Shown: piece after piece, positions 12,049 to 46,319 of the stretch
Layout of the letters: every line of letters starts with the position of its first letter
How positions within the stretch are numbered: position 1 is the first letter of the stretch
NCBI GenBank assembly: GCA_015680685.1
Contig: MNCI01001727.1
Coordinates: 393,617 to 457,616, forward strand
Reading direction: 5' to 3'
Length of the DNA stretch: 64,000 nucleotides
Origin: Gnetum montanum
Taxonomy: Eukaryota > Plantae > Gnetophyta
The notes under the pieces: generated by a model
What the model was told of the DNA's origin: nothing
Seen by the model: only the letters and a program-made list of their open reading frames with translations
The model's database searches: none
Position numbers and translations under genes: made by a program

Positions 12049-12614
12049 CCAATCAAGATATTAATACCTTTGTGTGAAAGAAGTAATTATAGCTATATCC
12101 AAATAAAGAGTGTCACCTTCCCCCATAAGAGCAACTGCAACATGCTAAGGAACTAAAAAGCTTAAATGAGTCACATGGATTTATCAAATATGAGGAGGAC
12201 ATGATGATGATTGATACTTTAAACATGGAATTTGAAGGGATTTGTGCATGTGGCTTTTTACCTTTTCCACATGATGCACTTTAGATTTTGTTGGTTTAAT
12301 AAAGGAAATAGTCAATGGTTCCTAAGCTTGAAGGGTCTATTAGGTTTTTGGGACATGAACTTGTCAGAAAGGCTTGGGAGTCTATTGCCCATTTGTTTTT
12401 ATTTATCATGTGTCTGTGGTGAAGCTACTCTCTACCCCTAATTGGATGGGTTTCTACCCCTTCTTGTTGGTGCTTTAGTGAGCTTTTCACTCACTTTGTA
12501 ATGTAATCTTTTTTTTCGATAATATAATCTTAACCTTCTTTTAAAAAACCAATGCATGTTCCTTGACCACCATGACAAATTAACATGGTGTCAAACTCTC
12601 AAAACTTCAACTCA

Positions 12615-13758
12615 TGCTTGTTGACCTGAAGGTGATTGATATGGTCATGCAAGAAGCGATGGCTAAGGCCACAGCAAAGATTATGTGCCTAGAAGCAAGG
12701 AAAGCAGAGATTGTAGTGATGATGAAAGCCACCTTGGAGGTGGCAGCGGCAAAGGAAGCAAAGGTCACTAAGGAGGTGGCAGCGCAAGCTCAACAAGAGG
12801 AGCAGCTCTTGTTGGAGGCTAAATGGTAGGCAAGAGAGGAGGAGTTCTACCACAAGATGGCCCTAGCTAAGAGTCAGTTTGTTGAATAGAAGCATGAGGT
12901 AAAGAGGCATTGAAATCTCCAAGAGTCAGCGAACCGGGTAGTGCTTGAGGACACACTGTGGGAGCAAATCTGTATCGAGATCGTTCAAGAGGAGTAGCAC
13001 AGAGTTGAACAAGAGCTTGCGAAATAGGAGCAATGTAAGCAAGAGTAGAGGAAGGCGTAGGAACTCCAACGATAGAATGATTGTGCCCATGAGCAAAATG
13101 CTTAAATGTGGTTAAAGATAGGAAAATGCCCATATGTGGTTATGGACATTAACTGCAACATGTCTTGGTTGGCTCTATGCTAGCACATCCACAAAACTTC
13201 ATCTTGATGGGACAAATACAGCTAAGGAGTGAGCATGAAGGTTGAGGCCTTAAAAGACTTCCAGCAGGCTACTACATTTGTGGACACTGAGTAACACAAA
13301 GAAATTCTGGATGCCATTCATGCCCAAGAATGTGCAACTTGTCATTGTATTAGGCTTTCTAGATATCTTTAGGCTCTTGGTCTTTTGTTGTTCTTTTTTT
13401 GTCAATCAAGTGGATGTTTCCTTGTTTTGATTGAGTTTTGGGTTTGGTCCTTGGGTCTCATTTTTGGGGTTTCTACTGGTATTTTGAGAATGGAGGGACC
13501 CACATTAGGGGGATTGTTCTTTTCCTTGTTTGCTTAATTAACTCGACCCACATTAGGGGGGTCTTTCTTTAACTTGTTTGCTTAATCAACTCTAATCGTG
13601 AGGTGTTTGCCCCCCTTCCAAAGGGTGGTTTGATGGGGATAATACAGAGCTTCACTGCTTCTATGTCACTTTGGTTCTGTTTTTCATTGTATATATCACA
13701 ATTTTCTTAATATAATTTTCCCAATCTCTTTTCAAAAAAATAAAAATAAAAATAAAAA
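12615..13758 (+). mobile_element. 5'-truncated LINE copy A (only the coiled-coil/His-Cys tail of the ORF2 extension, 3' UTR and A-rich tail)
   Basis: TSD TTCAACTCA at 12606-12614 and 13759-13767; A-rich tail ~13734-13758; peptide QATTFVDTE*HKEILDAIHAQECATCHCIRLSRYL* matches the end of LINE copy B. Confidence 0.8.
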
Positions 13759-14531
13759 TTCAACTCACTTTCCTAACATCTCATGTTTGCACAATGAGAG
13801 AAATGCAGCCCTAGACAAGCACCATTTAGCAATGTTTAAAACTTAATAGTTGTCTCAACAAAACCCACACCCCTTCAACAAAATTTCCAACAAACAATGC
13901 CCACTTTTATTTACCAACATGGGTACAGTCATGATCAAATTTCAAATATGCATAAGTCCTTATATTACATAAATACTCAATGGATCTTGTAGTCCACACA
14001 AGAAGAACATAGGTGTTTAATAAAATGGTAGGGTATTAAGCACTCCAAAAGGTAAACCATTGCTGCCCACAAAAGAGATCATTGACGTTCAATAAAGTTA
14101 GATATTTGGGTTAATTTTTCATGTCTTATTGACTACTTACTTCACCTTTAATATGCATTTTGCTATGCCTCTAGCTAGCATTTGATGTATACATTAGAAA
14201 ATGCTACCAGAATTAATGGCTTCACAGTATAACTAGTTACTCAACAAAACTTCAGTACTTATGAAGTTATTAACAAGCTGACCTTGTCTTGTAGATTTAA
14301 ATAGACACTTCGGCATTGTATTCTATACAAATAAGGTTCAAAGATGTCTACCTGAAGCTTGATTGTCATGAGAAAATTTAGAGGTAATCCAAAATCAAAA
14401 TGATCTTTAAAATATTAAAATGCACAGAAAAATCAAATTGGTTTATTTACATTAATGTAATATGTCCTTTTTATTCACTCAATAAAATTCAAATCTAGTT
14501 TTCTTTCCCGCTCAAACCGACATGTTTTCCA

Positions 14532-18016: not shown

Positions 18017-19290
18017 TGAGAACGGTGAGGATGACAGTGCAGCAGGAGCAAAGGATGGCAATGTTTAAGGTGAATAGGGTGGTCTGCACAGCAAGCAGGG
18101 AGAACAAGACAAGAATATAGCTACGGAGGAGCAAAGGAGGACCATAGAAGCATCAAAGGTGACACAAGCCATAGTTTGAATGACCATAGCAGCAAGGCAT
18201 GCCAAGAAGATGGTGGCCAGGAAGAGGATAGACAAGGTCCCCAATTTCATATAGTTCAACAAACTTATGAGGACACAGAGAGGAGGTTGGACATTCTGAT
18301 GAGCAGGGAGACACCGATGGCTTCGGCAGCTTTGAGGATGTTAGGGCACATGCAAACCATAACAGGTCTTCACACCCAAGCAAAGGAGGTAATAGAACAA
18401 CATCAGTAAAGAATGGGAAACTCCACCTGTAGGTGAAAGCATGCAAATCCTAAAGTGCAATTTGATCAGTAAGTTTGTTTCTGCCAATGTGCATCCTAAA
18501 ATTAAACAGGTTAAGTGTTGGATCATGTCTTCCTAAGGTGTTGCAATGGTTGAAGCTAGTGTTCTTCCAAGAGATCTCTTACTTTTTATTTATTAGTCCC
18601 TAGAAGATCAGGAAAAGCCTTAAGGAGGCCCCTTGATTTTGTCATCACCAATTGACATGCAAGATCTCACAAAGACCCTAACCTCTTTGATAAGGTTTAG
18701 GTCTAGATTCAGATCTTTAGGTGTTCTTAGCAGTTCTAGTACAACTCCTTTTTATCCACACTTGTAGGGTTTTTTATTGAATTTATTTCCTTGACAGGTT
18801 CATTGTATTGCAAGCTAGAATGGGATATGCTCGCTACTATGTTTAGAGATCCCTACAAAAGCATAAACTCTTGCATAAAATCTGCTTAGAGATGCCATCT
18901 AAGGAGGAGATTTTACAAGTTGAGTATGAAAATATCCCTACGGATAACAAACCCAAGGCTTTGGCCCTTGGAAACAAACGGCAAGCTCCTACTAGGAATA
19001 GAAACACTTTTTCAACATCTAGGAAGAATAACAATGGTCCAAGCCATGCAAGCTTGCAAGGCTATGATTTCTATGGTAAGCCCTAATCAAGCCAAAGATT
19101 GTTGAGCTCAAATGAGGAAAGAAGTTCAAGCCAACACAATACAATCAAGTTGACAAATTGTTAGGCAGAAGGGCAAAGTCCAAACAACAACTCCTCTAAA
19201 GCTAGGCACTAAGGTCAAGATGCCTTCAGCAATACCAACCCCAAGAAACTTAGAGAAGATGAATACGGGGAACCAGTTCTCTGCCGTCAT
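18017..19290 (+). mobile_element. LINE ORF1 (DUF4283-like) remnant
   Basis: QILKCNLISKFVS...VKCWIMSS*GVAMVEASVLPRDLLLFIY*SLEDQEK aligns with ORF1 of LINE B (EHSLIGCFVS...WGVGAVDVRSLSEDLLLFISSTKEDR). Confidence 0.6.
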
Positions 19291-21140: not shown

Positions 21141-21545
21141 GGAATTATGCATATTGGTGATTTTTGGTGTCTTTTGCATATTGGAAAGTCGAGTGCACAT
21201 GCTCTATTTTGTTGAGCATTTTGTGTTCATTTTTTGAGGGGTTTTCAACAAAGTCATCATGTCCCAACTCATTGTTAAATGGTCCTTCATTCAAGCTTAT
21301 ATTTCTCTCAATGTGAAAACATGGGAAGCTGGAAAAGTTTAATAATGAGATTTCAAAAATTTAATACAATGTTAACTCATCGTGGCAGTCAAGATTAGTA
21401 CATATCAGATTTTATTGTTCACATGGCAGTCAAGATTAGTGCATATCAGATTTTATTATTTTCTTTCCTTTCCATTTAGCATAAGAGCACATGGAATTTT
21501 GCTACTTATCTGCTCCAAAAATCAAAATTCTAATTCTGTAATGAC

Positions 21546-24500
21546 TTTTTTTGAGAGAGAATGTTCAGGTTTTAAATTAAATTACCAGAGAAAAAAGTAA
21601 TGTTACAGGAAACGTGCCAACAGAGGTGGCCAACATGGAAAACACCTGTGATCAAGAGGGGAATACCTCGAGTAGCGGTTCTCCAAGACAACCCCCGCCC
21701 CCCACAAAAAAAACTGAAATCAGACACCAGGGGCTCACAACGTAGACCCACAACACAAAAACAAGGCCAGATTGGCCATCTAGAGACAACAGGAAAAGCA
21801 ACCCAACAGGCAGGAGGGGGATCACAGGTGTCCAGGCAACCTATGACATGCATAGTGTGGTCGCTCAAGAGCATGGAGTATATCCAATGTATTATGATGC
21901 AATTCAGAATCTATGAAACTAACGGCCTGCTAAATTGCCTGCATGGTCACCTCCCGACAACTCTGCTCCTCGGCCAACGTCCCCCCGTCCGAGTGGAAGC
22001 ATGTGGACATATAGTGTATGTGTCGCTGGAGCACCCCCCACGAGCAATCATAATTTAGGCCCAGCACAACATATGGGCATCTCCCCTCCCTAAGCCATTG
22101 TCATGCGTTGTATTCATGCACTCAGTCTAGTTGCCTTTGTCTTTGTCACTCCTCTTCTTGCTCCCGATCTTGTTGCACCCCTTCTGCCCTCTCGTGCTCT
22201 CTACAGGCTACCTCCTCCTACAACAACTCCTCCCGAATCTAGGCACAAAGCTCATCTGCCAACCTGGCCCAAGCTGCCTCTGCCATCAAGGTTTGTTGTT
22301 GAAGCAGCTCCTACTCCCACTCCTGAAATTGGGCTTCCAGGCTCGCCTGCACTTGAGTGAGGGTTTCCTCTCATCTAGCTTCCCAATCTCATCTTTCATC
22401 GACTTGAGCAATGGCTGCCGCCTCCTCCACCAGACAATGGAGCTCCTCCTCCTGTAACAGGTCACATCCAACCTCTGTCTGCAGAAAAGTGTCTGCCACC
22501 GCCATAGGGTTTGAGACAGCCAATTCCCGAAGGCCAGCTTGCTTCTGTGAGTAAACCACTATGGGCGTGGCCCCCGACCAAGAGGACCCAGAGGGACCAA
22601 ACGGACCCACCTCGACCCTAAGGGCCTGGATGGCACCAGCCTCGACCACAACCCAGACGCCCCCCACCAAAGAGCCAAAATAAGCCCCGAGTGGCATCCT
22701 CTCTTCTGCTGCTGCAAGACAACTAGACAGAAGCAAGGCAAGTTAACCCTAGCTCCCAATTTCAAACATTTGAGGAAAGCAAAGTACATGCCCTAGAGTT
22801 TGGACCCATTGCCAAATTGGACAAAAAAACGGTCCACCAACTCAACAGTTTGAGCCCAAACATGTGGCAGAGTGGACTTGGGCACTTGTTGACTTGGCAT
22901 GCATGGCACCAGCCCAATGAAGAACATGTCAACATCCTATAACCCTCGAGTAGTGGGCAGAATGATTTCACCCTCTTCTTGGGCCCCCAAGTATTTGGCA
23001 ATCGTTGTTTCTCTAAGGGTGATTTCAACACCTCAGAAAAACATCTAGTTACCTTGCCAATTAGTAAAAAAAAAGGCATCATCTAGGAGGGTAGGGTCTC
23101 CCACTAGCCGCAGCAAGACATGGTCCCATCCACAGTGTTCCACCATCCCCCAGAGCTTAGTGTTTGCCTGAAACACCGCGCAGTTAGGCTCATAGGTTGG
23201 CATAACCTCCATCGCCGCCACCATCTCCTCCAACGCTCATGCAGCTTGTGAAGCAACCTGCATAGGTAGGGGCAAACGACGTTGTTGGAAGACTTTATGA
23301 TTTTTGGTTTTCCAAGCTTCCCATCAAAGTAAAGTGGCCCTAGAGTTTCTCGAGAGCATTGGGGGGGAGGCCAAGCCATCGTGTGCCACGTGGCATGCAT
23401 GTAGATACATTAAAAGGTGAAATGCAAGAGAGTCTCGGGCTCATTCCCGCAAAGCAGGTAGGTGGCGTCGATGTTGAAGTTGTGCCTTCTTAAATTCATT
23501 CAAATTGGCAGGGCGTTGCTTTCAAGAAGCCATAAGAAAACTTTCATTTTTTCCGACAAATGCCCCTACCATATCTACATCCAACCAGGTACCGATGGGT
23601 ACATGGTAGAAAGTAGTTGATGCGGCTCGCAATTCAACCACTCCCGCAACTACATTCGTTGTGCATGGACACAGAGTGTCTACCATGGCCTTGAGTTATG
23701 CACCCCCGACTACCATCAGATGTACTTGCCATTCATTATCCATATCCACTAGGCCATCTCCTCATCCTAGTGGGTGAATCTAATTAGTAGGCATTGCTGA
23801 CCAAGCATCATTTCATCCTCGAATTTAGAGACTCCCAGACCCCCCACGGCCCAAGGGCACGCAATCCAATCCTAGCTGGCCAAGTGCAATTTGCCACACC
23901 CCCCACCCCCCCACCCCCCCCCCCCCCCCCCCCCCCCCCCCNNNNNNNNNNNNNNNNNNNNNNNNNNNNNNNNNNNNNNNNNNNNNNNNNNNNNNNNNNN
24001 CCTGGATCATAGTCCATTGCATTGGGGGGGGAGGGGGGGGTGCCGCCAATGACCACAGCCACAAAATGTGCAATTGCTACTAGCACCCTTGATGCTAGCA
24101 CCAGCCACCCTTTTTGGGTAAGGAAATGGTTCGCCCACTTTCCTATCTGATTCTCAAGTGTCTCTAGAACTGCCCCCCAAGCCACACAACATCCCCAATT
24201 AAACAACAAAATGCCTAGGTAAGAATCCCAGAGCATTCTAGAAGGAACTCCCAAAATTTGCATAACCTGGCTCCTCACCTATGCGTCCACGTTGAGGAGG
24301 TGTACTGATGACTCCTCATGATTTACCACCAGGCCGAGTTCATCAGCCATCCATGTATGTGCCTAGTTAATGCCTTGCATTTGTGGGACCCCTGCCCGAC
24401 TGATCAACATAGTGTTCAGCCAAACACTCCACCCCAATGATTTTCAGGCCCCCCACTCCCGCAACCTTACAATAGTATCTCAAAAGATCCATACTAATGA

Positions 24501-27500
24501 TAAAGAGCAAAGGTGAAAGAGGGTCCCCTTGTTGTAATCCCCTTCTAGGAGATGAGANTGAATACATAGTTTGATGAATTTTGGATCAAATCCTTTCTAC
24601 CTTATAATTTTGGTAAGCACCTCCCAACTGATCGTATCATATGCCTTTGCAATGTCTAACTTGAGACATAGCCCAGGGAATTTTGAGAGACGCAGGGAGT
24701 GAAGGAGTTCTTGCATGAAAAACACCTAGTCTTGCAGAGTCTGTCCCTGAACAAAACCCGTTTGGTTATCCCCGACAAGTTTGGGCATGATGGGGACCAA
24801 CCTCTGCACAAGCAACTTAGAGAAAATACAGCCTAACACATTGTACACCCCTATGGGTCGAAAGTGGGCTAGAGAGGAGGCATCCGTACGCTTGGGAATG
24901 CATACGATTCGGGAGCAATTAATTTCATGGCAGACCTACCTCTTTGTCAACATTAGATTAAAGGCATCAAGAATGTTGGGTTCCACAATATCAAAAAATA
25001 CCTTGAAGAATTCCAGACTTCAACCATCCGGCCCAAGGGCCTTCACTCCAAGCATAGCCCCAATAGTTGCTTTCAGCTCCTGCCAGGTAAAAGGAGTCAA
25101 CAGTCAAGCATTGTCTTCTTCTCCCATTACCTGTAGAACCTACACTGACATTGGCAATGTAGGCTGTTTTGCCCAAATCACTCCCTAATATGTTGTCAAC
25201 TCACAAGCAATGTCCTTTGGATCATCAATTAGGTCCCTCGTGTTAGTCTGCAACACATGTCATTGACTCCATCTACGGGATTTGGCTGTGGCAAAAAAGA
25301 ATTTTGTTTGCTTGTCTCCCTCCTTGAGCCATGTGACCCGCGATCTTTGCTTCTAGTAGATTGCTTCCTCTGAGTCAAGCGACTACAATTGCATCAGAAT
25401 GTCCTGCTCCTTGTCATGCAAGTCCTCCCCAACTTCTTATTGGTATTGCACTTGGGCCAATTTGGATCGAAGGGCTGTACAGCCCATCCGAAACAAGAAC
25501 TCCTCCTCCACAGGTAAGGATCTGATAGCCCACTTCAGACAGAGGAGCCCCTCCTGAAGAAAGTTCCTAGGATCTCCTTGGCCTGGCCGATAGTTTGTGT
25601 AGATGTCCTCCACCAATGGGCATAACCAGGGCTTGAGCAACCAAGCAGCCTCAAACCGAAATGACCAAGGGGCCCATTTCCTCGGAGGCCCAATACAACA
25701 AATGAGTGATCGGTGATCCAAGGCAACCTGCTCCCGTCCCATTACCCACACATCTAGTCTCCGAAGGAAGTCCGAGCTAATGCAAACACAATCAATTCTA
25801 GAGAGAACGTAGCCAGTGCCCTTCTGCCTGTTGCTCCAAGTGAATTGGCAATTTTTGATTGCCAGGTCTACCAGAGAGTAAGATGACAAGAAATTTTGAA
25901 ACTCCTGGGCTCCAGGGGGAGCAACCAGCATCAAATGTTTCCCAATAGTGGAGCCGCTAGTTGAAATCCCCAACAACGAGCTAGGCACAGCGATCTGACA
26001 CTAGCAATGCCACTCTCTCTAGTTCTAGCAGCCTCAACTCCCAATTTTGGGCCCCACAAAAGTTGGCCAACCACAAGCCCAAGGAGGGAATGTGGACAGT
26101 CTAGGCCCACTACAATGAGTCAACTAAAAGAGTTTTGAACCACGCCAAGATGGCCAAGCCACCCACTCGCCCCATGTAGGGCTGTAGGTGCACCTTCCAG
26201 CCTTCCCATTGAAGGTGGCCGACCTTCGTTGCCTACAATTTGGTCTCCTGAAGACATACAATGTCACAATCCTCAGTGCAAACAATCTACCGTAGGGTAT
26301 TTCTTTTATAGGGCACACCCTATCCCCTATAGTTCCACGAAAGGAGCTTCATGTGTGACCGGTCAAGCGGTACTGGTAGACCTCCCACAAGGTCTGTTGT
26401 AGTCCTAAGTCAATATTCCATTTTGTCTACTTATCCTACACCAGGCTTTCGAAGGGGCGGCCCGGTCAACCCCCCTCCGGTACCACCAAAGTACACCCGA
26501 GCTCCTCTCAGTGAGGGCAAGCCTCCTTGGGCTTTTGAGATCTTGTGCTCCCCTATATCACATTAACCCAATTGCCAAGAGGGAGAAGCTCAATGCCAGG
26601 CATGGTTGACTCAGCCAAGAATGGAAAGGCCAAGGAGACCAGAGGGGAGCAGGCGGCTTGCTCCTGCCACAGCAGGGAGGCTTGTGGGGAGGCCCACTGG
26701 GGGGGTGTCGAGGGCAACATCAGCACCTGTCCCTTACACCCAACAGCCATCCAACCCCCACCCACTCCAGCCTCACACATCTTAGCATGCATCGGCCTCG
26801 CTCCCCCACCACAAAATCAATAGTCGAGCTCACGATGTCTGTTCTTCCCCAAAGGAAGCAGCCTCTCCCTCAGGCAAGGGGGGTGCGCTTTCTCCACCAA
26901 TGGTTCAGTCTCCATATTTTCAAACTCTGCTTACAACTGTTCCTTGCCACTAGGGAGTTTGAGCACCACCTCCTTGATTAAGTCCTTCGGGGACAAGGCT
27001 CGCTAGACATAGAAATAGGCAAAACCCATCTGCTCCATCGACTATGTCACCTTATCATAAGTGATGAAATCTCCAAAAAAAAACCTTGCAATCCACCTAA
27101 GAAAATCCAAGCTCCACATCTCCCATGAAATCTTGGACACACGCACCCACACTGGTGCATGAGCAAACAAGTCCGGCTCTCTATGTGCTCCTAACTATCA
27201 AGGGGTCAGAGCTAGTCCTTTGGCTCCATAAAACAATGGTTCACCTTGAAGGACCGTATTGCGGTCTTCCTTTGTTGAAGAAATAAACAGAAGCAGGTCC
27301 TCGGAAAGGCTTCTCACATCCACCGCTCCAACTCCCCACACCTTCGTCCACCGCCGGATAAGGTCCATTCGGGGGCAAGGGCGAGCGCTAGATGACACAA
27401 AACATCCTATCAAACTATGTTCCATCGTTCGCACCCGCTCCTCCAGCGGTCCACTAACCCAAAGGCGCATGACACCGTCCGAGCACGAGCATTCTTCAAT

Positions 27501-27720
27501 GTCCCCATTCACTGTCGCAAAGCACACCCCCCTCCCACCTCAAAAAAAAAAAAACATTTCCCTCCATAGCATGTCTCTCAAGGCCATCCGCCTGCAAACT
27601 GGGTTGTGCACCTCCTCAAGGCTGCATGCAATGTTCATGTTCTCTGTTTGCATTGCACCCCTTTCCTCATTTGCACAATACCCATTATCTCCGCTCACTT
27701 TGCTCGAACCCACAATACCC
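21546..27720 (-). mobile_element. Near full-length L1-type LINE copy B (ORF1 DUF4283; ORF2 endonuclease-RT-zf-RVT plus extra C-terminal domain), decayed
   Basis: ORF1 27198-27527; endonuclease FTWSNRQ...SRIDCV...DHRSL and FRFEAAWL; RT LKLDIAKAYD and GLQQGDPLSPLLF; zf-RVT KMKVFLW...CGNEPETLLH; T7 tail at 21546-21552; probable TSD ATTCTGTAATGA (21533-21544) / ATTCTTTAATGA (27721-27732). Confidence 0.88.
21822..23233 (-). pseudogene. Extra C-terminal coding region of LINE B: accessory-ORF-like domain, coiled coil and His/Cys tail
   Basis: Same frame as WEAWKTKNHKVF; homologous peptides at 28835-29160 (+) and 12615-13372 (+). Confidence 0.75.
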
Positions 27721-29161
27721 ATTCTTTAATGATGCATTTTTATAGTATAGAGACTTTTACCCCTTTTACGGTTATTATCTACTGCTTACTGTTTTTCTGA
27801 TTCCATAAAATAACAATAATAATGATAAACAGTCACCTTTAGAAGTCTATTATCCGTCCTTTGTTTTTCTTTCTTTTCCTTTTCCTGTAAAGGATGTCAG
27901 AGACTGTCCATCCTCTGTTTCAAACTTTCAGCCTACGCAAATAGAAGACCCTTTTTTCACTGGTAATTTACTCCCTATGATTCTGCCTTTCAAACTAAAG
28001 AAAGTCCAGAAACTGAAATTTGCCTTGGGCTAACTAGAAAAAAGGGAAAGTTCTCATCGCCTCTATGGTCCCTCTGGCTATATCCAGGTACATGGCATCG
28101 GTAGCAGCCCCAGCACAGCAGGTTATCAACAAGATCAATCAAATCATCATGTGTTTTGTTTAGTCTGGCCAGAAAAGAGGTCATAAAATGTATCTTATTT
28201 GCTGGGAAAAGCTAGTGAAACCAAAATCTGTAGGAGGATTGGGAGTACCAAGGTTTGAGGATTCAGTTCTATTGGGTCATCACAATCTCACCAGAAGAAT
28301 TATGGATACCAATGCAAATGATGTTTCGTGAGTCACCATAGTTAAGCGGCAATGTAGGCTCTAGGGAGTGTTCCAATAATGATTCAACTTTCTGAAGGAA
28401 CGTCTACCAACAAGACTCTACACTACGCCATTTTGCCTCATCAGAACCAGCCAGCTCAAGGGATATTTTGTAGGGCAGTATGGAATCACTCAAGGATGGC
28501 ATGCGATTTGCAGACACCTCCTGGAAAAAATCAAGATGTTTTTATAGTTCTTTACCAACCGAGGCCTTTCACTATCATCATGGTCTTGAGCTTAACACCA
28601 GCTTCCCGTTGTGCAGTGCGGATGCCACTGAAATGTAATCCCATCATTTTTATCTCTGTCCTTCTGTTTTTCACATTTGGCAGGTTAGTGGTCTCAACTT
28701 GTCCCTCCCACTACATGGTGATAGCCTTGCTAATGCACTTCTATGGTCTATCAAGAAGACCAGGAATGTTGTCATTTTCAGAAGCGCTTTTGTTTCCCTG
28801 CTTTGCATTGTCATTACACATGCTAATTTCTTATGAAAGGAGGTCCTTGCAGCCATGGGACTGATGCTAACCTATGAACCGGACTGTGAACATTTTTAAA
28901 ACAACCAAAAGCCTTGGAGTATGGTGCATCAGGTTGGATGGGCTGAACTGTTGTTGTCGCTCAAGGGAGATGCCAATTTTCAGGATTTCATTTTCTTTAC
29001 TCACTGGGAAGATGAACATACCACTTTCAAAGGGGTACATATTTGCTTATCTAAAGAAGCTATTACCAAATATTTCATCATCCAAGCATTAGGGAGGTTA
29101 TTCTGCCATCAAACCAAGGCCTTCCAGATGCAACCCCTTTCTTACTAGGGCAAATCCCCAA

Positions 29162-29787
29162 TGTTGGAAAAATGAAGACAAATACATTAATTGTTGTATT
29201 TCCTTTTATGTTGCATTTGATGTCGGGATGTGTTTTATCCCACATGTATTAGGATTGGGGTTTGGTCCTCATGTTTCCTCATAAATAGGAGGCTTGGTGT
29301 TTTATCCCACATGTATTAGGATTGGTGTTTGGTCCTCATGTTTCTTCATAAATAAAAGGCGTGGGGTAGCCTTTAGCATGTGCTTTGAAGTGAAAGCATT
29401 GTATCAAGGTTTTACCTTGGAGACGTGAGTCTTGTTGGTGTTGATCTGAGATCTATTGGAATAACAGATTGGGTGTTCAGAAAAGTTACAAGGATGGCTT
29501 GTGTCCTGAAGATTTGAGAAGAATAGAAGGCAGATCAGCATTGTCGTGGAAATAGAGTAAAAAGGGCCCGAACCACATAACTTTCTATGTTTTTGTGCTA
29601 TTTTTACTGATTTCATTCTGCTTTCATTTTGTTATCACAGCAAATGTTTGCTATAGTGTTTCTTGACCTGCTACAGTGCAATATTTTGCCTCTAATGATT
29701 TATTCAGATCTGTAGGGTTCTAATAATTTCTCTAGAGCATTTGTAGTGTGTTTTCAAATCTAATTGTTTTCAGATTTGATTATAACA
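29162..29787 (+). repeat. Copia 5' LTR
   Basis: TGTTGG...TAACA followed by the PBS; roughly 4% substitutions against the 3' LTR by manual count, plus two indels. Confidence 0.9.
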
Positions 29788-29814
29788 ACTGGTATCGAAG
29801 CTAGATTTAAAGAG

Positions 29815-32800
29815 ATGGAGAGGCTGCAAACAACGGAAAAATTGGTAAGAAGGAACTGGAACATTTGGAGCATTTTGATGAAGGTTGTTTTAGCACAAAA
29901 GGAGTGCCAAGAGGCCCTAGAACCTCTCAACCAGCAGGAATGTCAAATGTTGATTGGAGGAAAATTAAGACTAGGGCATTATCTTTCATTCATCCAACCC
30001 TAAGCAATGGGATTTTGGCCTCAATCAAACCTGATATGGATCCGCCTAATCTGTGGCAAATGCTGAAGAATAGGTTTGACAAAGTATCAGGTTTGAATAC
30101 CTTTCACATTTATCAGAAAGTTTTTAGATGCAAGAAGAGATCTGATGTGTCTTTTCAAGATCATTTGGATGAGATGATGGGAAATCTGAATAAGTTGAAG
30201 GAATATAAAATTGTTATTCCAGATTTAATTAAATCCTATGCTTTGTTAGACTCCTTACCTGATTCCTGGTCTACAAATGTGATATCTATTACTACTTCTA
30301 TGAGTGTTTCATCTATGACATTTGAACAGGTTGTGTCTACCCTTCAGGATTTAGAAGAAAGAGTAGATGAATCTTCTAGATCTAGAAATGTTCATGTAGC
30401 AGAGAAAAGAGGTAGAAGTAGGAAACCTTTCCCAAGTAGGGGGAGAAGCACGGACAAAGGAGTATCACATGGCAGAACTCAAACTCAAGAGTGCTAGTAC
30501 TGCAAGAAGAAAGGTCATTTGAAGAAGGATTGCTTTCCATGGAAAGCACAGAAAAATGAGAAGAAGTCAAAAGAAGGAACATCAAAGGTACATGTAGCTG
30601 ATGAAACCGTTAGTTTTCTGATTCAAGAACAATGTACAATGGTGGCAGATGGATGTAGCAGTGACATCTGGTTGATTGACTCAGGTGCCTCCTTTCATAT
30701 TTGTCTAGATAAGTCTTGTTTTGCATCTTATCATAAAGTTGAATCTAGTTTTGTATATGCTGCTAATGGAAAAGCTTTAAAAGTTCTTGGAATTGAAAGT
30801 ATAAGTCTACAATAAGTAGGGATGCCAAAGGTGACAATAGATAACGTTAGACATGTTCCTGAAGTTACAAAGAAGTTGATTTCAATTCCACAGCTGGATG
30901 ATTCAGGTCTGAATTTTAGTAGTGGAGGTGGACATTGGAGGATTTCCAAGGAAATCATGACCATTCTGAAAGGAAAGGAGGGCAGCTTATATACATTGAT
31001 GGCAGATTCATGCAACTCTATTGCAACAGTTTCTGATACAGAAAATTCTGAAGTGTGGCATAGACATCTTGGACACATTGGCTGGTCAAGCTTAAAGGTA
31101 CTTCAAAATCAGACTATCATTCCTATATTTTCGTATGCTCAAACTGATTGCAAAGACTGTTTAGTTGGAAAATCTATGAGAGTAAATTTTCGTAGGAATT
31201 TGGACAGCAAAAAGAAAAATAAGTTAGAATTGGTTTATTCTGATGTTTGTGGTCCTATGACTCCCATTTCTCTTGGTGGATCTATTTATTTTGTGACTTT
31301 CATAGATGATTGTACAAGGAAGGTTTGGGTTTATATGTTGAAATCAAAAGATGAAGTGTTTTCAGTTTTCAAAACATTTGTTGCAAGAGTAGAGAATGAA
31401 ACAGGTTTGAAAATAAAATGTTTGCAAACTTATAATGGTGGGGAGTACACTTCTAAAGTATTTGCTGATTTTTGCAACATCAAAGGAATTAGGCACGTTC
31501 GTACCCCTCCTAGTACACCACAGGGAAATGGAGTTGCTAAAAGATGCAACAGAACATTGCTGGATCATACTAGAACAATGGTTTCAGGTGTAGGCCTACC
31601 TAAGATATTTTGGGGAGAGGCAGTTATGACTGCTGCATATTTGGTGAACAGGTCTCCACATTCTTCAATTGATAATGTTGTTTCAGAAGTTGTTTGGAAA
31701 GGTAAAAACGTTTCATACAGTCATTTAAGAGTTTTTGGATGTGAGGCATTTATGCATATTCTAAAGGAAAACAGAACTAAGTTGGAGGACATGGCTAAAA
31801 GTTGCATATTTGTTGAATATGGAGAAGATGAGTTAGGATTCAGACTTTGGGATCCTAAATTGAAATGTGTAGTGAGATCAAGGGACGTTAAATTCAGAGA
31901 AAATGTGATGTTTAGTGAGCTGCAAAAGAAAGACAAAGACAGAAATGGCTCAGAAAGCATAAAGACTCCTTTTAGCGTGACTAAAGAAATTGAAAATGAT
32001 GAAATTCATGGATTTTCCAGATCTGGAAACTTTGGATAACATGCTGAAAGTACATGGTAGCAAGCTAAGAACTTAGGATAGCAAAGAGAAAATGCAGGAC
32101 AGTAAGAAAATGAGGTAGAAGATGATGAACAACAAGCTACAGATGTGTCTCATTGGGTTAGAAGGTCAACCAAAACTACCAGACCTCCTGACAGGTACTC
32201 TCCCTCATTGAATTATGTACTTTACAACGATAGTGATGAACCAGAAACAGTGAAAGAAGCCATGACATGTGTTGATACCACAAAGTGGAAGGCAGCTATG
32301 AATGATGAATGGAAATCACTCCAACAGAACAAAACCTGGGAGCTAGTTTAATTGCCAAAAGGGAGAAAACCCTTGGAGTGTAGGTGGCTATATAGAATTA
32401 AATCAAAGGCAAATGGGGAAAAACGTTTAAAGGCTAGGTTGGTGGTGAAAGGCTATGCATAGAAACCAGGTATTGACTTTCAAGAAATTTTTTCTCCAGT
32501 AGTAAAACACTCTTCTATACTTTTAGTGCTATCATTGGTGGCTTGCATGGACTTAGAGTTGGAACAACTTGATATAAAAACAGCATTCCTCCATGGAGAT
32601 TTGAAGGAGGAAATTTACATGAAACAGCCAGAAGGGTATGAAGAACAGCAAGGTTCAGGTTTGGTTTGTAAACTAAAAAAGAGTTTATATGGTTTGAAAC
32701 AAGCCCCTAGGCAGTGGTATAAAAGGTTTAATACTTTCATGAAGAAGCTATCTTATCAGAAAAACAACCTACACCACTGTGTGTATTTTTTTGGAGATGT

Positions 32801-33794
32801 TTCAAGTAAATTTATAGTGTTGTTGTTGTATGTTGATGATATGCTAATTGCTGGAAATGATATAGCAAAGATAAAACGTTTAAAATTGGAAATGGGCAAA
32901 GAATTTGCTATGAAGGATTTGGGATAGGCAAAGAAAATTCTTGGTATAAATATTTATAGGGACAGAAAAAGGAAGAAGTTGTGGTTGAGTCAGGAAAATT
33001 ACATTGGAAAGGTTCTAAAGCATTTCAACATGGAGGATGCAAAACCTGTAAGTACACCTTTTTCAGCACAATTTAATTTATCAAAGAAGGACTGTCCAAA
33101 GTCAAAAGAGGATTTTGAAAAGGTTAAAAATATCCCATATACTTCTGTTGTTGGGTCATTGATGTATGCCATGGTTTGTACACATCCTAATATTGCTTAT
33201 GCTGTTGGAGTAGTTAGTAGATTTATGACCAACTATGGGTGGAATCACTGGTTAGCTGTCAAATGGATTTAAAAATATTTAAAGGGCACAAAAGCGCATT
33301 GCTTATGTTTTGGAGATGCTAATCTACACATTGAAGGTTTTGTAGATGCAAACTTTGCTGCTGATCATGATACAAGATGATCTTCTATAGGGTACACATT
33401 TATTTTTGGTGGTGCAACAATGAGTTGGTTGTCACGTCTACAACCACTAGTAACTTTATCTACAACTAAATCAGAGTACGTAGCTTTCATAGAAGCATGC
33501 AAGGAGATGTTATGGATGAAGAGATTTTTGCAATCTCTTGGATTAAAACAACAAAGGTATGCTGTGTTTTGTGATAGTTTGAGTGCAATCCATCTTGCAA
33601 AGAATTCTACCTTTCATGCTTGGACAAAACATATAGATGTATGATTCCACTTCATAAGAGAAATCATAGAGGATGGCTTGGTGCATGTTCAAAAGGTCCA
33701 TACAAAGCTCAACGTTGTTGATGCTTTAACAAAACCAATGATAGCTGAAAAACACATTCTCTGTAGGAAGAAGCTTGGGATAACTAAAGCTTAA
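29815..33794 (+). pseudogene. Copia gag-pol with multiple stops and frameshifts
   Basis: ORF pieces 29865-30497, 30519-30815, 30822-32039, 32145-32351, 32526-32927, 32979-33272, 33420-33644. Confidence 0.9.
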
Positions 33795-33847
33795 TCAGAA
33801 GTGCACATCTCTTAAAGGCTGGTTGGATTTGTCTTCAAGGGGGAGTT

Positions 33848-34459
33848 TGTTGGAAAAATGAAGACAAATACATTAATTGTTGTATTTCCTTTTATGTTGC
33901 ATTTGATGTCGGGATGTATTTTATCCCACATGTATTAGGATTGGGGTTTGGTCCTCATGTTTCCTCATAAATAGGAGGCTTGGTGTTTTATCCCACATAT
34001 ATTAGGATTGGGGTTTGGTACTCATGTTTCTTCATATATAGAAGGCTTGGGGTAGCCTTTTGAAGTGAAAGCATTGTATCAAGGTTTTACCTTGGAGACG
34101 TGAGTTTTGTTGGTGTTGATCTAAGACCTGTTGGAATAACAGATTGGGTGTTCGGAAAAGTTACAAGGACGGCTTGTGTCCTGAAGATTTGAGAAGAATA
34201 GAAGGCATATCAACATTGTCGTAGAAGTAGGGTAAAAAGGGCCCAAACCACATAACTCTCTGTGTTTTTGTGCTATTTTTACTGATTTCATTCTGCTTTC
34301 ATTTTGTTATCACAGCAAATGTTTGCTAGAGTTTAGAACGTTTTGAGAGTGATTTATAGTGTTTCTTGACTTGCTACAGCGCAATATTTTGCCTCTAATG
34401 ATTTATTCAGAGCTGTAGGGTTCTAATAATTTCTCTAGAGCATTTGTAGTGTGTTTTCA
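33848..34459 (+). repeat. Copia 3' LTR (truncated by the N gap)
   Basis: Direct repeat of 29162-29750. Confidence 0.9.
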
Positions 34460-36639
34460 NNNNNNNNNNNNNNNNNNNNNNNNNNNNNNNNNNNNNNNNN
34501 NNNNNNNNNNNNNNNNNNNNNNNNNNNNNNNNNNNNNNNNNNNNNNNNNNNNNNNNNNNNNNNNNNNNNNNNNNNNNNNNNNNNNNNNNNNNNNNNNNNN
34601 NNNNNNNNNNNNNNNNNNNNNNNNNNNNNNNNNNNNNNNNNNNNNNNNNNNNNNNNNNNNNNNNNNNNNNNNNNNNNNNNNNNNNNNNNNNNNNNNNNNN
34701 NNNNNNNNNNNNNNNNNNNNNNNNNNNNNNNNNNNNNNNNNNNNNNNNNNNNNNNNNNNNNNNNNNNNNNNNNNNNNNNNNNNNNNNNNNNNNNNNNNNN
34801 NNNNNNNNNNNNNNNNNNNNNNNNNNNNNNNNNNNNNNNNNNNNNNNNNNNNNNNNNNNNNNNNNNNNNNNNNNNNNNNNNNNNNNNNNNNNNNNNNNNN
34901 NNNNNNNNNNNNNNNNNNNNNNNNNNNNNNNNNNNNNNNNNNNNNNNNNNNNNNNNNNNNNNNNNNNNNNNNNNNNNNNNNNNNNNNNNNNNNNNNNNNN
35001 NNNNNNNNNNNNNNNNNNNNNNNNNNNNNNNNNNNNNNNNNNNNNNNNNNNNNNNNNNNNNNNNNNNNNNNNNNNNNNNNNNNNNNNNNNNNNNNNNNNN
35101 NNNNNNNNNNNNNNNNNNNNNNNNNNNNNNNNNNNNNNNNNNNNNNNNNNNNNNNNNNNNNNNNNNNNNNNNNNNNNNNNNNNNNNNNNNNNNNNNNNNN
35201 NNNNNNNNNNNNNNNNNNNNNNNNNNNNNNNNNNNNNNNNNNNNNNNNNNNNNNNNNNNNNNNNNNNNNNNNNNNNNNNNNNNNNNNNNNNNNNNNNNNN
35301 NNNNNNNNNNNNNNNNNNNNNNNNNNNNNNNNNNNNNNNNNNNNNNNNNNNNNNNNNNNNNNNNNNNNNTTCCTCACCCCTTTGTATCCAACTTGTAACT
35401 TATGCTATTTCCCTATAATATAATTTAGCAAACCATTTCCCAAAAATAAAAGAAAAAGAAATTGCCTTAGACTAAAAGAGATCATTGCAAATTCCCAACT
35501 CTGATGAGCTGTGTTGATAATTAAAGTTTCATATTTGCTCTAGGTCCTCATTTTCCCTTATACTCAGATTTTATTGCTAAAAATTCAGGCCCTACATTCA
35601 AAGGTTGTTTGCCAAATTTAGGATGCCTAAAATTGGAGAAAAACAATGGTTGATTTTCAGATGAGAAGCAAAGCTATGTAGCTCTCCCCATTGTATGATG
35701 TGAGCTATTTCTTATATGGCATTTAAAATGTCCTTGAGAGGCATAGTTAGCTTCCTTTAATTATATGTTAATGATGGTGGATCTTGGAAGCCTAGAAGCC
35801 TTCTTGGGCTTAGGTCTTATTGCATAATGAATGTTTTGTACATTTTGTCATAGTTAGATTTTCCTTTCATGCAAAATAAAGTATTATTTATTTATTCTTG
35901 CTTCAATATGCTAACCCATTTATTGATCAGCAATTATGCTCAGCTATTTATGCAATTATCTATATATTCTTGCTTCAACCATGTATGTTTATTTGCTTTT
36001 CATAAAATGAACCCATATGAATTATGATTAGAAGCCCTTTTGGCCCTAGGATAAGCAATTCAATTACATAGCACTTGAAGGTTTTCAATGATGTAGGTAC
36101 CATTCATAAATATGTACCCACCTCACATACAATCCCCAGCTACCTATCTTAAGGGTATGTCAAAGTGTAGTCCAAAAATGATGGTTGAGCAAAGCCTTAT
36201 TTGTATAGCCTAGAACCTAAAGATAACCCAACCCATGATCCAATGATTCTTCAAGTTGGATGGTACTTAATGTGGGAATGCAATGCCACATTGCATGGGC
36301 AAAGTCGTTGAAGCCTATATATTTTTGATACCCAACCATTGTTTGAAGCCTATTATAGATTAAATGATCTTGTTTGGTAAAAACATAGTAGAGAATTAGA
36401 ATTACATCCAAACACATCTGTTGGTGCTACTTCTAAAACAAAACTTGTAACAAGTGAGCCACATAAATGTTTGGTATTTTTTAATTTCCTTATGATGGGA
36501 AGTGTTAGCCATCACCCTTGGTTATGCTAGTCCTTAAAGTATCATAATACTACTAAAGATAGATTATATGCAATTGATGCATCAATACTTAAAATTAAGA
36601 AAAGTAGGAAGGCCTCATCTCATGGACAACCTGTTTGAG

Positions 36640-39600
36640 GGAAGGAGGTACATAGGCCCTGTAATCAACCCATAACTATATGAGTCATATTCTTATTAGT
36701 TGCTAGAGTAAGTATAGTGCCATGTTTTAAGAGGATTGGAGAAAAAATTTGTACTTAATTTTAGAGAGTGGTTATTAGTGATCCTGCTGGATTTTGCTTT
36801 ATAGAGTCCCACCCCAAGATGTTGAAAGGGATCTGATAGAGATTCCTCAAGTTAAGGGAAGGGCTCCCTTGGGGGCAAAGGGATAAACCCCCCTCATGAG
36901 GTCTCCCAAATTGAATAACAAGTAATTCCTTCAGCAAACAAGGAGGTTTCTACAAGAAAAGACCCTCCACACCAAATGGGGGAGCTTCCTCCCTTGAGAA
37001 GATGAGTCAAGCATCTCAAGGGGTCATCCATTACTTCTCCTCCCTCACCTAAACCGATTTGTCACCAAATCCTAAAAGAAAAAGAATAAGGGTTTCAAAG
37101 TCTACCTAGAGAATCAAAAGGCAAGGAGACCCAACACACAGAAGGCAAGTGATGTACTAGTAGACCATGAGACTTCTCTCCTAGAACTACATGGGCTAGG
37201 GTACCCCATACAGACAAAATAACCTAAAAGATTTGGTGATGCAAAAAGGTTGTGATGTGGTCTATTTACAAGAAACAAAATGACAAGTTTAGCAAAGAGA
37301 GTATCTTCAATGAAAAGAATGGTACGCCTTCTTTGTTGACAGTAGGGGAAGAGCTAGAGGTTTTGTTATCCTGACAAGAATGTAAGCACATCAGTGGTAC
37401 AGCTGAACCTAGAGCATTACTACCTTCTTATCCTCCCTTAACATCTAGCTCACCAACTTCTATGGCCCTCAAAGTTGGACTAAGCACATTCAGGAATCAT
37501 GATCGTTGAGTTACTACTAGATGTAACGACGGAAAATGTCGGCAGCTGGAATACCAAACAAGATCCGTATATACAGTCTTAACCACGGATCCGTGCGAGG
37601 GCTGTGCTGGAGAAAACGAATCCGCAGTGCCCTGAACGGTCTTGTCGATCAAACAGGGACTTACTAAATCAGTAAACCGATGGAGATTATGAATATTTTC
37701 GTGGAACAATTTGATTCGACGAGTCGCAAAATGAGAGAAAAACGATGTAGATAAATTGTAATAATGATAACGTTAACACGATAAAAGGAATCAAACACGA
37801 GAGAAACGCGTGATTTCAAGATCTATGCTTTGACCCGAAAAAACGAGTATTTTGTATACCAAGTTACACTGGGGAGACCCCGATTATCCTGTGCGAAAAC
37901 AAACACAAAATAACAAGAAAACTGTCCAAGCAGAAGTACAGAATGGAGTCCGATCTACCTCGTAGGCCAGAGATGGGATGCAAGGAAGGTCAAGTTCTGA
38001 CGTCTATCGATCAACTGCTTCTGATCAATAGAACTCACAAGCCACACCAGATGATCTCTCGATCTCTGATCTGCTCCTTTTGCCTTGGGTAGTCTCTACT
38101 CGAAACTGCCAATGATCACCAATGGAGAAAGTTGTGTCTTCGCCAAAGGGCCGATCGCTCCTGCTGCCAATGCTCAAGCAAAATGTCTCTTGTCTCTGTT
38201 AAAAGATAGTGCTGCCAAAAGATTGCCAAAAATGCTGCTCTCTTTCTCTATCTGTCTCTCTGTGCCCCTTCTTGCCAACTGAGGTATTCATAAGTTTGAC
38301 AACATGTGGAGAAGGCATGGCTGTAATGACACATGTTCCAAACCTTTCAGAAGATCGTTGACTTGACCATCCTTGTGTTGAAATTCATGACTACGCACAA
38401 TACGCGCATCTGCGTATTGTGTGTATGAATAACAAATGTGGATCGGGCATGTCTCAGTTGATTTTGGGCTACATTACGCTCGTACGCATTGCGTCGTGTG
38501 CCAGAGCGTAATAAAGCACAAAAGTAATGGACTCAAGTTGCTTTACGCTCGTTCACGCTGCCAAGCGTAGTGAAGCGTAAACAATGATTAACTTGGCGAT
38601 GAATTACGCTGACGTACGCTACGTTGCGTAACGAGCGTAAGGTGATCAATCTGCAAGAAAGAGAAAAGAGTTGATCTGTTGCGCTTCCTTTGGATTCTCT
38701 TTGACGTTTTCGAAGCTCATTACGCTGCCCTGTGTAACAGAGCGTAAATCTGCTCTTGGACAAAAGACTTAGCAGAATACACGAGAGATCGCATATTACG
38801 CTGCTTAGGCCTTAAGCTTCGCCAAATCTGCTGAAGTAAACCGCCTTCTAATATCAGACTATGTTACGCTAAGTGTCATTACGCTATGTTGCGTACTATA
38901 GCGTAAAGACGGAAAACATAGTAAGATAGGAAATCTGCAAAAGGAAACCGAAATCTTGATGTCGCACGCCTCTTTGCCTTGCCTTGCCTTGTTCTCCTTT
39001 CTAGAATTNGCGCCTCTTTGCCTTGCCTCGCCTTGTTCTCCTTTCTAGAATTCTGTCATGTACTTTTGTCTGAATCACGAATCTTCGCCTGAAGCCGATT
39101 CACAATTTTCACAGTGTTTCACTAGAGACTTTAACCAAAGACTTCACAGTTGGGAAAAATCCACAATGATGAGACAGAACCTTCGGACAGCAAGGAATAC
39201 AACCAATTTCTCTAGGGATATCATCTTATAGATCTCAATATTTAGGGATGCCAATACACTTGAAGCAATAATCGTAAAGGGACTAAAAGTGTTCTCTCGA
39301 GGATTGACCAGGTGTGTGTAAGTTCTCCATTACACTTGCTCTCTCAATTTGCCCTCATAGTCTTTGAATGACAAGCCTCTACTCCTAGTCTTTGATCTTT
39401 TGCAACAAGAGAGACAAACCTCCCATCATTTCAAATTTAAGTAAAGTTGATTACAAAAAGCTTGGCTTAGGAACTTGGTTATAGATGCTTAACCAATTAC
39501 CCTAATAATCAGGATCCAAGGAACTTCCTAAAACAGGCTTTGGCCTACGTTAAGAAAGGGATAAAGATTCATCCAAAGCATGAGAAATACGCCTTCAAGT

Positions 39601-40100
39601 TTACTAAGAAACAGAGGCTTCAACATCTACACCAAATTCAATCTCTTCAAGAACAAGGCTTTGACTTGGCTGAAGAGGAAATGGAGGTTCTTCAAGACCT
39701 ACAGATGCTAAAGAAAGATCAAGAGCTTGATATACTAAGGTTTTCTTTGCTGCTGCAGAAATATCCAATAGTGCTAAGAAAATTCATATGTTGCAAGTTG
39801 ACAATGACCTCGCATTGGACCTAGACAAAATCACATAGGCCATGGAAAACTATTAGAAGGGCATTTAGACCAAGTGATCCTCCTCCCCCATTTCTATCCC
39901 AATATGGCAGGTCCTGGACCAACACAACAACCAAAAACTTTTAGTCCCAATCTCAAACGCTGAAATCTCTGAAGCCATTATCACTATGAAGTTGGGTCAT
40001 GCTCCTAGCCCTAATGGATGGCCAATTGAATTTTTTAAGGAGTTCTTTGATAGTCTTGGTGATAATCTCATTGACTCCTTCGATCTAATGCTCAAGACTT
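36640..40100 (+). mobile_element. Highly decayed LINE D (ORF1 tail, endonuclease, RT start), split by a Tat solo LTR
   Basis: CDVVYLQET (~37251); (G>R)DFN immediately after the solo LTR (39124); RIDQVCV (~39300); APSPNGWPIEFFKEF (~40000); ends approximate. Confidence 0.6.
37522..39121 (-). mobile_element. Solo LTR of a Tat-clade family with perfect 5-bp TSD
   Basis: CTAGA at 37517-37521 and 39122-39126; TG...CA termini; colinear but diverged homolog of 3904-5360. Confidence 0.9.
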
Positions 40101-45320: not shown

Positions 45321-45752
45321 CGGTGCCCATAAAGGGAACGAGTCGTCCTCGGAAACGCCAACTCCCATGCGCTCAAACACTTCCACGGCGGTGTGCCGTG
45401 ACGCTTCTTCGCTGTTACACAGCACTCCGTCCATGTCAAACAGCACAGCGCTTACTTTCGCTATCTCCGTTCCCGTCTCCATCTCCATCTCCATCGCCTT
45501 CCCATTCGTACTGCTTTTGCTTGCACATGCCCTCTCGCCTTTCACGCTGCTGCAACATGCGTGGGGACGCTTACGACCGTAATTTCCACTGCTGCTACTG
45601 TGCCGCTGTGGTGGTTGTTGATGCTGATATGCATAATAATTATTATTATTATTAGTGTTAGGGCTAGCGCTCCATATGCGGGAGCTGCTGATGGCCCCCA
45701 AGGACGCCAGGGCGGTAACGGTTTTTGTGTTTGCATTGTGCAGCGCATACAT
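45321..45752 (-). CDS. SOQ1: SOQ1-like exon 1 (transit-peptide-like N-terminus, HAD motif I DxD)
   Basis: First in-frame ATG at 45752 (MYALHNA...); LFDMDGVLCNSEE; GT donor GTATTC at 45320; one T missing in GAC T(T)C GTT CCC TTT ATG GGC ACC. Confidence 0.8.
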
Positions 45753-46319
45753 GGAGTCTGCTGGGGCTGGGGCTGAGGCTGAGACATGGCAGGAGCGGCA
45801 TGGCTGGCTATTGATAATGCCAAATGGGCGCTGCGTCTTCCCCACCTCGTGCTCGTGGTCGTGCTCGTGGGGATGGGCAGGGTGGCATGCGAGTGTCCGT
45901 CATGTCTGTTTTGGTTTAATTAGTTGTTCCTCTAACACTGAAACAATGCACGCATGGGGGAGGCAAGTTGAGGAGCTGCTATCCTATCCGCTTCGCTGTG
46001 GGTCATTCGTTTCTGGAACGCTTTGCTCCACGTGGAGATGCTGGGAGGCATGCTCACCCAGCTTTATTTCCCGGTCCTCACTCCAATTATATAAACCATG
46101 GATTAGTGGAAATTATCATTTAGGTTTTAGCTTAGGGACAAGGTTACCGTTTTCTCATTACAAAGCCTATGATGTGGTTGGTGAGAGCATGTGTATGTAT
46201 GTTGTGAATTGGTGTACATGCATTGTATGTCATCATACTCATGATGTGTTTCATCTAGACATGAATACATGATGACGAACTACGATTGATTGCACCTTTT
46301 AGGACATTGTAAACTGCTA

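Follow-up and report, generated by a model that had tools for sequence, protein, structure and literature searches.

What does a long interspersed nuclear element (LINE) of the gymnosperm Gnetum montanum encode beyond the end of its reverse transcriptase (RT) gene? The question is raised by a stretch of 64,000 nucleotides of contig MNCI01001727.1 (GenBank assembly GCA_015680685.1, positions 393,617 to 457,616, forward strand), here called the window, in whose coordinates all positions are given. In this window a decayed LINE, copy A, carries about 1.5 kb of former coding sequence past the point where open reading frame 2 (ORF2) ends. A preliminary description of the locus had proposed that the ORF2 frame continues here into an extra module resembling the accessory ORFs of long terminal repeat (LTR) retrotransposons. 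The comparison of copy A with two further copies, B and C, makes it highly probable that this 1.5 kb stretch represents an accessory coding module, now decayed, that belongs to a family of L1-clade plant LINEs and was carried along in retrotransposition as the element's 3' portion. The module can be divided into an N-terminal domain (N-domain), a coiled-coil-like stretch and a probable J-domain (Table 1).

The end of ORF2 in copy A is marked by a motif piece, WEAWKTKNHKVF..., which occupies window positions 23240-23323 on the minus strand and is followed directly by a TGA codon at 23237-23239. The same frame resumes at 23236, and 470 codons, at least one frameshift included, lead from there to a further TGA at 21822-21824, with 13 internal stops on the way (four in the first frame and nine in the second). 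All strings quoted in the preliminary description were recovered at this place on the minus strand, and both its continuation of the frame past the W..WK.KN motif through the TGA and its figure of about 470 extra codons after the zinc finger (zf-RVT) proved accurate. For scoring, breaks in the reading frame were read as X; the frame between about 22440 and 22740 was read from copy A alone. The stretch at about 22104-22442 that had been taken for an E/Q/A-rich coiled coil has the composition of one, with no proline, one glycine and 66% E/Q/A/K/R/L. The module had also been said to be followed by a short 3' untranslated region (UTR) and a poly(A) tail, of which the former is present as a 276-nt 3' UTR region (21553-21821), while the latter amounts in copy A only to a run of seven A (A7, 21546-21552).

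Table 1. Positions of the three LINE copies in the window and of the parts of copy A around the extra module.
Feature	Position (nt)	Strand	Basis or remark
Copy A, full-length decayed L1-type LINE	21546..27650	-	Three-frame translation, Pfam and guanine-plus-cytosine (GC) content; 5' end approximate
ORF2 end in copy A, W..WK.KN..VF motif and 16-residue tail	23240..23323	-	Aligned with copy B
Module, N-terminal domain	22670..23236	-	About 190 codons, 4 stops; aligned Met at 23210-23212
Module, linker	22443..22742	-	Frameshift somewhere in 22670-22740
Module, E/Q/A-rich helical, coiled-coil-like stretch	22104..22442	-	8 stops; homologous to copy C
Module, probable J-domain and short C-terminal tail	21825..22100	-	Y..LG ... 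H-S-D; one internal TAG at 21930-21932
3' UTR and A7	21546..21821	-	Partly alignable with the copy C 3' UTR
Copy B, 5'-truncated diverged LINE copy	28050..29161	+	tblastx against copy A
Copy C, 5'-truncated insertion with only coiled coil, J-like tail and 3' UTR	12615..13758	+	tblastx against copy A

When the whole of copy A was compared with the window by blastn, only the self-match was returned; copies B and C were recognised in the window by tblastx. Copy B is colinear with copy A through the C-terminal region of the RT (28185-28298 against 23892-23779), the zinc finger, the junction and the first ~105 codons of the module, a span of about 820 nt (28185-28998 against 23892-23069) over which the spacing is 813 nt in B and 823 nt in A and amino-acid identity is 36-42% (tblastx E ~1e-20). 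At 29162 copy B is broken off by a copia LTR, and its remainder was looked for past the copia insertion and an N gap and was not found. The other end of the module is provided by copy C, whose coiled coil aligns with that of copy A at 37% identity over 123 codons (tblastx E 5e-20), and in which the module stop falls in the same alignment column (TGA in A, TAG in C). The 3' UTRs of A and C align in part, that of C being longer because of an internal duplication at 13495-13590 (plus strand), where CCCACATTAGGGGG...TTGTTTGCTTAAT occurs twice. Copy C ends in a 25-nt A-rich tail (13734-13758) and is flanked on both sides by TTCAACTCA, a 9-bp target-site duplication (TSD) at 12606-12614 and 13759-13767; such flanks and tail are the typical marks of a LINE insertion that was truncated at its 5' end. 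The module accompanies the LINE in three independent copies within the window and is, as the preliminary description had supposed, an integral part of the family; it is not an accident of one locus.

A chance juxtaposition, in which a LINE lies next to, or was inserted at, a piece of some other element or gene and the common frame is fortuitous, is extremely improbable. It could appeal to the crowding of the window with nested gypsy, copia and LINE fragments and to the 3' end of copy A, where the tail is no longer than A7 and no TSD of at least 9 nt was found, a point that does count against an integral module. However, the very diverged copy B keeps the same junction at the same spacing, the tail of the module forms the 3' end of the TSD-flanked, A-tailed copy C, and GC content is even across the LINE body and the module of copy A (0.50 and 0.52).

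The divergence between the copies has the pattern of a protein-coding sequence. In gapless tblastx blocks, nucleotide identity between copies is close to random at the third codon position (0.32-0.44), as compared with 0.44-0.52 at the first and 0.59-0.64 at the second. Expressed as Nei-Gojobori proportions, differences in the module blocks reach 0.72-0.90 at synonymous sites (pS), which are saturated, versus 0.32-0.43 at nonsynonymous sites (pN), and no such contrast is seen when the same blocks are shifted one or two bases out of frame. A pS far above pN in frame, together with a similarity that is visible at the protein level only, means that the module diverged under purifying selection; the module was kept under such selection while the family spread, with each copy decaying after its own insertion. 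Over the 38 codons that lead from the W..K.RN motif to the TGA, pS (0.57) is about equal to pN (0.56), which suggests that this stretch behaves as a loose linker would.

These figures also bear on the idea of a passenger, in which a host gene, for example one for a J-domain protein, was acquired in a single event of 3' transduction or template switching and has travelled with the element ever since without serving it. J-domains are host-type domains, no LINE protein among 1.8 billion representatives is related to the module, and the picking up of a domain by a LINE has a precedent in an insect R1 element with a viral helicase domain (PMC4686597). We nevertheless consider a passenger improbable, since the copies have diverged beyond recognition at the DNA level and yet remain conserved as protein in the right frame. 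Protein conservation at saturated synonymous sites implies long persistence under selection while the element still transposed. The stop position and the downstream 3' UTR are, in addition, common to the copies.

A profile of the N-domain, made from copies A and B, was searched against 1.84 billion representative proteins and found one true relative, P0001 (E 3e-6), besides one spurious bacterial repeat protein. P0001 is a 91-aa ORF from a Trinity transcript of Welwitschia mirabilis in EukProt; it has no Pfam match at E up to 10, and a homologous-protein search with it returned only itself. The likeness to LTR accessory ORFs that had been proposed for this part of the module lies in the pattern W...TF..G..I.L....I...L.....GE.I, which by eye is like that of Transposase_32 (PF20167), ATHILA ORF-1 (PF03078) and the plant mobile domain (PF10536). 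The proposal fared unevenly: HMMER returned no match to any of these three families at E up to 10, either for any window piece or for P0001, while an ESM-Atlas feature search placed P0001 closest to unnamed plant clusters (0.93-0.94), the nearest named clusters being Transposase_32 (0.89) and ATHILA ORF-1 (0.88), both under the tool's 0.9 line. The N-domain is possibly a relative of these families, a language-model likeness that serves as a lead and not as a test. A capture from an LTR element, perhaps with a role in chromatin targeting or anti-silencing, had been offered in the preliminary description as a conjecture. In their known setting, these domains sit in accessory ORFs of LTR retrotransposons, whereas the domain described here is borne by a non-LTR element.

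Whether the module was a C-terminal extension of ORF2 or a separate ORF depends on how the junction is read. A TGA follows the ORF2 tail in both copies that span the junction (at 28834-28836 in copy B), and these two codons fall into line once an indel of two codons is granted. A methionine is aligned 7-9 codons past the TGA in A, in B (ATG at 28855-28857) and in P0001, which starts at this very residue; the source label of P0001, 'ORF type:comp', is cut off and was interpreted as 'complete'. Because of the TGA in both copies and the Met aligned in A, B and P0001, a separate ORF3 starting just after the ORF2 stop seems slightly more likely than a C-terminal extension of ORF2. In both A and B, however, the frame of the module is that of ORF2, and stops abound in the two copies, so that a fusion or a leaky stop stays plausible. 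As regards read-through of the TGA, the codons that follow it (GCG in A and AAG in B) do not fit the known plant and plant-virus read-through contexts. A second pair of stops falls in one column two codons ahead of the conserved W of the J-like part (TGA 22101-22103 on the minus strand in A; TAA 13103-13105 on the plus strand in C, with an ATG directly after it). With stops as dense as they are here, chance alone would give about 0.5 such coincidences, and the pair may be fortuitous or may mark a further ORF boundary.

The last ~75 residues of the module follow, by eye, the plan of a J-domain, with Y..LG, helix II, H-x-D and helix III in order, a likeness absent from the preliminary description. 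In a BLASTP comparison of the tail with the J-domain of E. coli DnaJ, Y..LG...H.D aligns in register (E 0.02). A narrow hidden Markov model (HMM), made from 120 DnaJ J-domains, gives 3.1 bits to copy A, a score reached by 7 of 5000 shuffles, and 0.9 bits to copy C (139 of 5000); the two matches are complementary and in the canonical register, with A covering helices I-II and H.D, and C covering H.D and helix III. An alignment of A and C together with 36 J-domains by hhalign has 45 columns in register at P 0.0017, with a probability of only 15%. For a 56-aa J-like piece, DnaJ clusters were two of the top three named ESM-Atlas matches (0.87 and 0.85). Taken together, these comparisons point to the tail probably being a J-domain.

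A number of results weigh against this reading of the module and its tail. Nine module pieces were compared with Pfam at E up to 10, and none matched any family, neither RVT_3/RNase H nor the J-domain family PF00226, a result by which the module is also neither an RNase H nor an ordinary ORF2 tail; the PF00226 profile likewise matches neither tail piece at E up to 10. Sequence searches of the PDB with the J-like piece and with the A+C profile were blank, the pairwise Smith-Waterman score of the copy A tail with E. coli DnaJ is not above shuffles (z 0.8), and the second half of the putative J-domain has an hhalign P of 0.37. The HPD motif is not intact and reads HSD (CAC TCG GAC) in A and HLD (CAT CTT GAT) in C. 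In a six-frame scan of the window with the narrow HMM, five other segments score as high as copy A or higher, so the J-domain statistics are valid only as a targeted test of a stretch picked beforehand by eye. The AlphaFold model of the 56-aa piece has a helix at 21-35, a loop and a helix at 42-55 and is too poor for a fold search, with a predicted local distance difference test (pLDDT) score of 56, and that of P0001, built on a small alignment, is also poor (pLDDT 48). The ORF structure, moreover, is read from decayed copies, none of them intact. A homologous-protein search with the J-like piece gave no candidate.

The tail could instead be some other small helical domain, with the module being LINE-specific and of a wholly novel type and the J-like register coincidental. 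The lack of a PF00226 match, the low hhalign probability with its unmatched second half, the broken HPD and the window-wide scan, by which such scores arise by chance, all speak for such a domain, but it would have to accommodate the same canonical register obtained by three methods, a targeted P of ~0.002 and DnaJ clusters as language-model neighbours, and we regard it as unlikely. It would also have to accommodate the state of the HPD motif, at whose proline position copy A has TCG (Ser) and copy C has CTT (Leu), each a single C-to-T transition away from a CCN proline codon, so that an ancestral HPD is plausible from the codons. Of the changes by which methylated plant repeats decay, C-to-T is the most frequent. 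The Welwitschia genome paper describes strong deamination of repeats brought about by methylation (PMC8275611), and this fits the decay pattern of the copies.

Copy A itself is a dead element. Its layout begins with an ORF1 that has DUF4283 and goes on through a putative endonuclease, the RT and a probable zinc finger to the extra module, the 3' UTR and A7. In Pfam searches, DUF4283 (PF14111) was matched in ORF1 at E 6.2e-6 (26.4 bits against a cut-off of 27.2), with a second DUF4283 match in the adjacent ORF1 piece (E 0.0037); a 69-aa piece matches RVT_1 at E 3.8e-4, below the gathering score because the RT gene is fragmented, and a 29-aa piece has a weak match to zf-RVT (PF13966; E 0.16). 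The RT of copy A also shows colinear similarity to other LINE fragments of the window, and A and B share the W..WK.RN motif. The endonuclease motifs LQETK, GDFN, FTWSN and a decayed SDH were found by eye in the translation, and no Pfam match to an endonuclease was obtained with the submitted pieces, one of which was out of frame. The GC content of copy A is 0.50 as compared with 0.39 for the window. The latter value is close to the GC content of repeats given for Gnetum in the Welwitschia genome paper (PMC8275611) and, with the Welwitschia relative of the N-domain, would suggest a gnetophyte or another gymnosperm as the source. An assembly gap of 59 N (23942-24000) lies inside copy A, upstream of the zinc finger, and the junction was therefore not produced by the gap. 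The flanks of the gap (window 23890-24030) contain C/G homopolymer-like runs, translated as poly-Pro/poly-Gly, which probably caused the break in the assembly. Beyond the 3' end of copy A, the AT-rich flank holds two tandem 37-nt units at 21383-21460 (plus strand), which are 95% identical and 41 nt apart.

Several other elements were recorded in the window. The insertion in the module of copy B is a Ty1/copia element at 29162-34459 (plus strand), with LTRs at 29162-29756 and 33848-34459 that are 90% identical, the 3' LTR running into an N gap at 34460-35369, and with an ORF at 30822-32036 that contains gag_pre-integrs, rve and SH3_retrovirus domains. Pieces of other, related LINEs lie on the plus strand at 37167-40093, 45743-45802 and 18537-18945; they comprise endonuclease/RT pieces split by insertions and an ORF1 fragment, and no module was detected at their expected 3' ends. 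An ORF at 38-718 (plus strand) has RT_RNaseH followed by RVT_3, i.e. two RNase H-like domains in tandem, a pattern known from Tat-lineage Ty3/gypsy elements.

In its general plan the family is like other plant L1-clade LINEs, with a DUF4283 ORF1, an RT and, probably, an APE-type endonuclease and a CCHC zinc finger. It also shows their 5' truncation, A-rich tail and TSD, these three being seen together in copy C and not in copy A. The LINE coding plan is generally regarded as very spare, consisting of ORF1 and of an ORF2 that encodes endonuclease and RT and, in some cases, RNase H. In 2013, Smyshlyaev and colleagues reportedly described plant L1-clade LINEs in which an archaeal-type RNase H was added after the ORF2 zinc finger. 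The module described here has the same placement after the zinc finger, but differs from those elements in that it is not an RNase H but a three-part protein of ~460 residues. Another example of a foreign domain gained at the C-terminal end of ORF2 is the SF1 helicase domain of insect R1 LINEs (PMC4686597), although the clade, the host kingdom and the domain are all different. With J-domain proteins (Hsp40/DnaJ, PF00226) the tail shares the canonical register of Y..LG, helix II, H-x-D loop and helix III, and recruitment of Hsp70 would be expected of it, whereas it differs in that the decayed copies lack an HMM-level match, have HSD or HLD in place of HPD, and carry the domain C-terminally, after a coiled coil.

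The architecture had not been recognised among described LINE clades in the preliminary description. Full-text searching for a J-domain or DnaJ in LINEs or other non-LTR elements turned up nothing of relevance, and the module is mentioned neither in a eukaryote-wide survey of how L1 domains are organised (PMC5203782) nor in the Welwitschia genome paper (PMC8275611). We did not find an architecture of an RT gene with N-domain, coiled coil and probable J-domain described for LINEs.

How such a module could have served the element may be proposed from its parts. The intact protein would have had ~460 residues. An N-domain of ~190 residues, with no detectable HMM family and possibly related at a distance to Transposase_32/ATHILA ORF-1, would have been followed by a long helical coiled coil and then, at the C-terminus, by the J-domain. 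Read as a separate ORF3, its translation would begin at the aligned Met 7-9 codons past the ORF2 TGA, perhaps by termination-reinitiation. J-domains bring Hsp70 to a client and trigger ATP hydrolysis. In the LINE, the J-domain would draw host Hsp70 to the ribonucleoprotein and boost its ATPase, and the action of Hsp70 would in turn aid assembly, remodelling, nuclear entry, or target-primed reverse transcription or release during it. Through the coiled coil the protein would form multimers, as L1 ORF1p does, and the N-domain would bind nucleic acid or chromatin. In its most complete form, the proposal is that a gymnosperm L1 lineage encodes its own Hsp70 co-chaperone, as a reinitiated ORF3 in which a Transposase_32/ATHILA-ORF1-like domain and a coiled coil are joined to a functional J-domain, and that this protein was required for retrotransposition; we put this forward tentatively, as a reading somewhat less likely than not.

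Parasitic genomes with a J-domain of their own are known, as polyomavirus T antigens carry one, while host chaperones, to our knowledge, are known in LINE biology only as recruited partners. If the present reading is true, a selected, LINE-borne J-domain protein would mean that a retrotransposon can control Hsp70 directly, as some DNA viruses do, and would provide a testable handle on the step of LINE replication that needs chaperones. If the ORF3 co-chaperone is true as well, its N-domain would be a module common to non-LTR and LTR retrotransposons, and, should the N-domain truly be related to the LTR accessory ORFs, modules would have been exchanged between the two great classes of retrotransposons.

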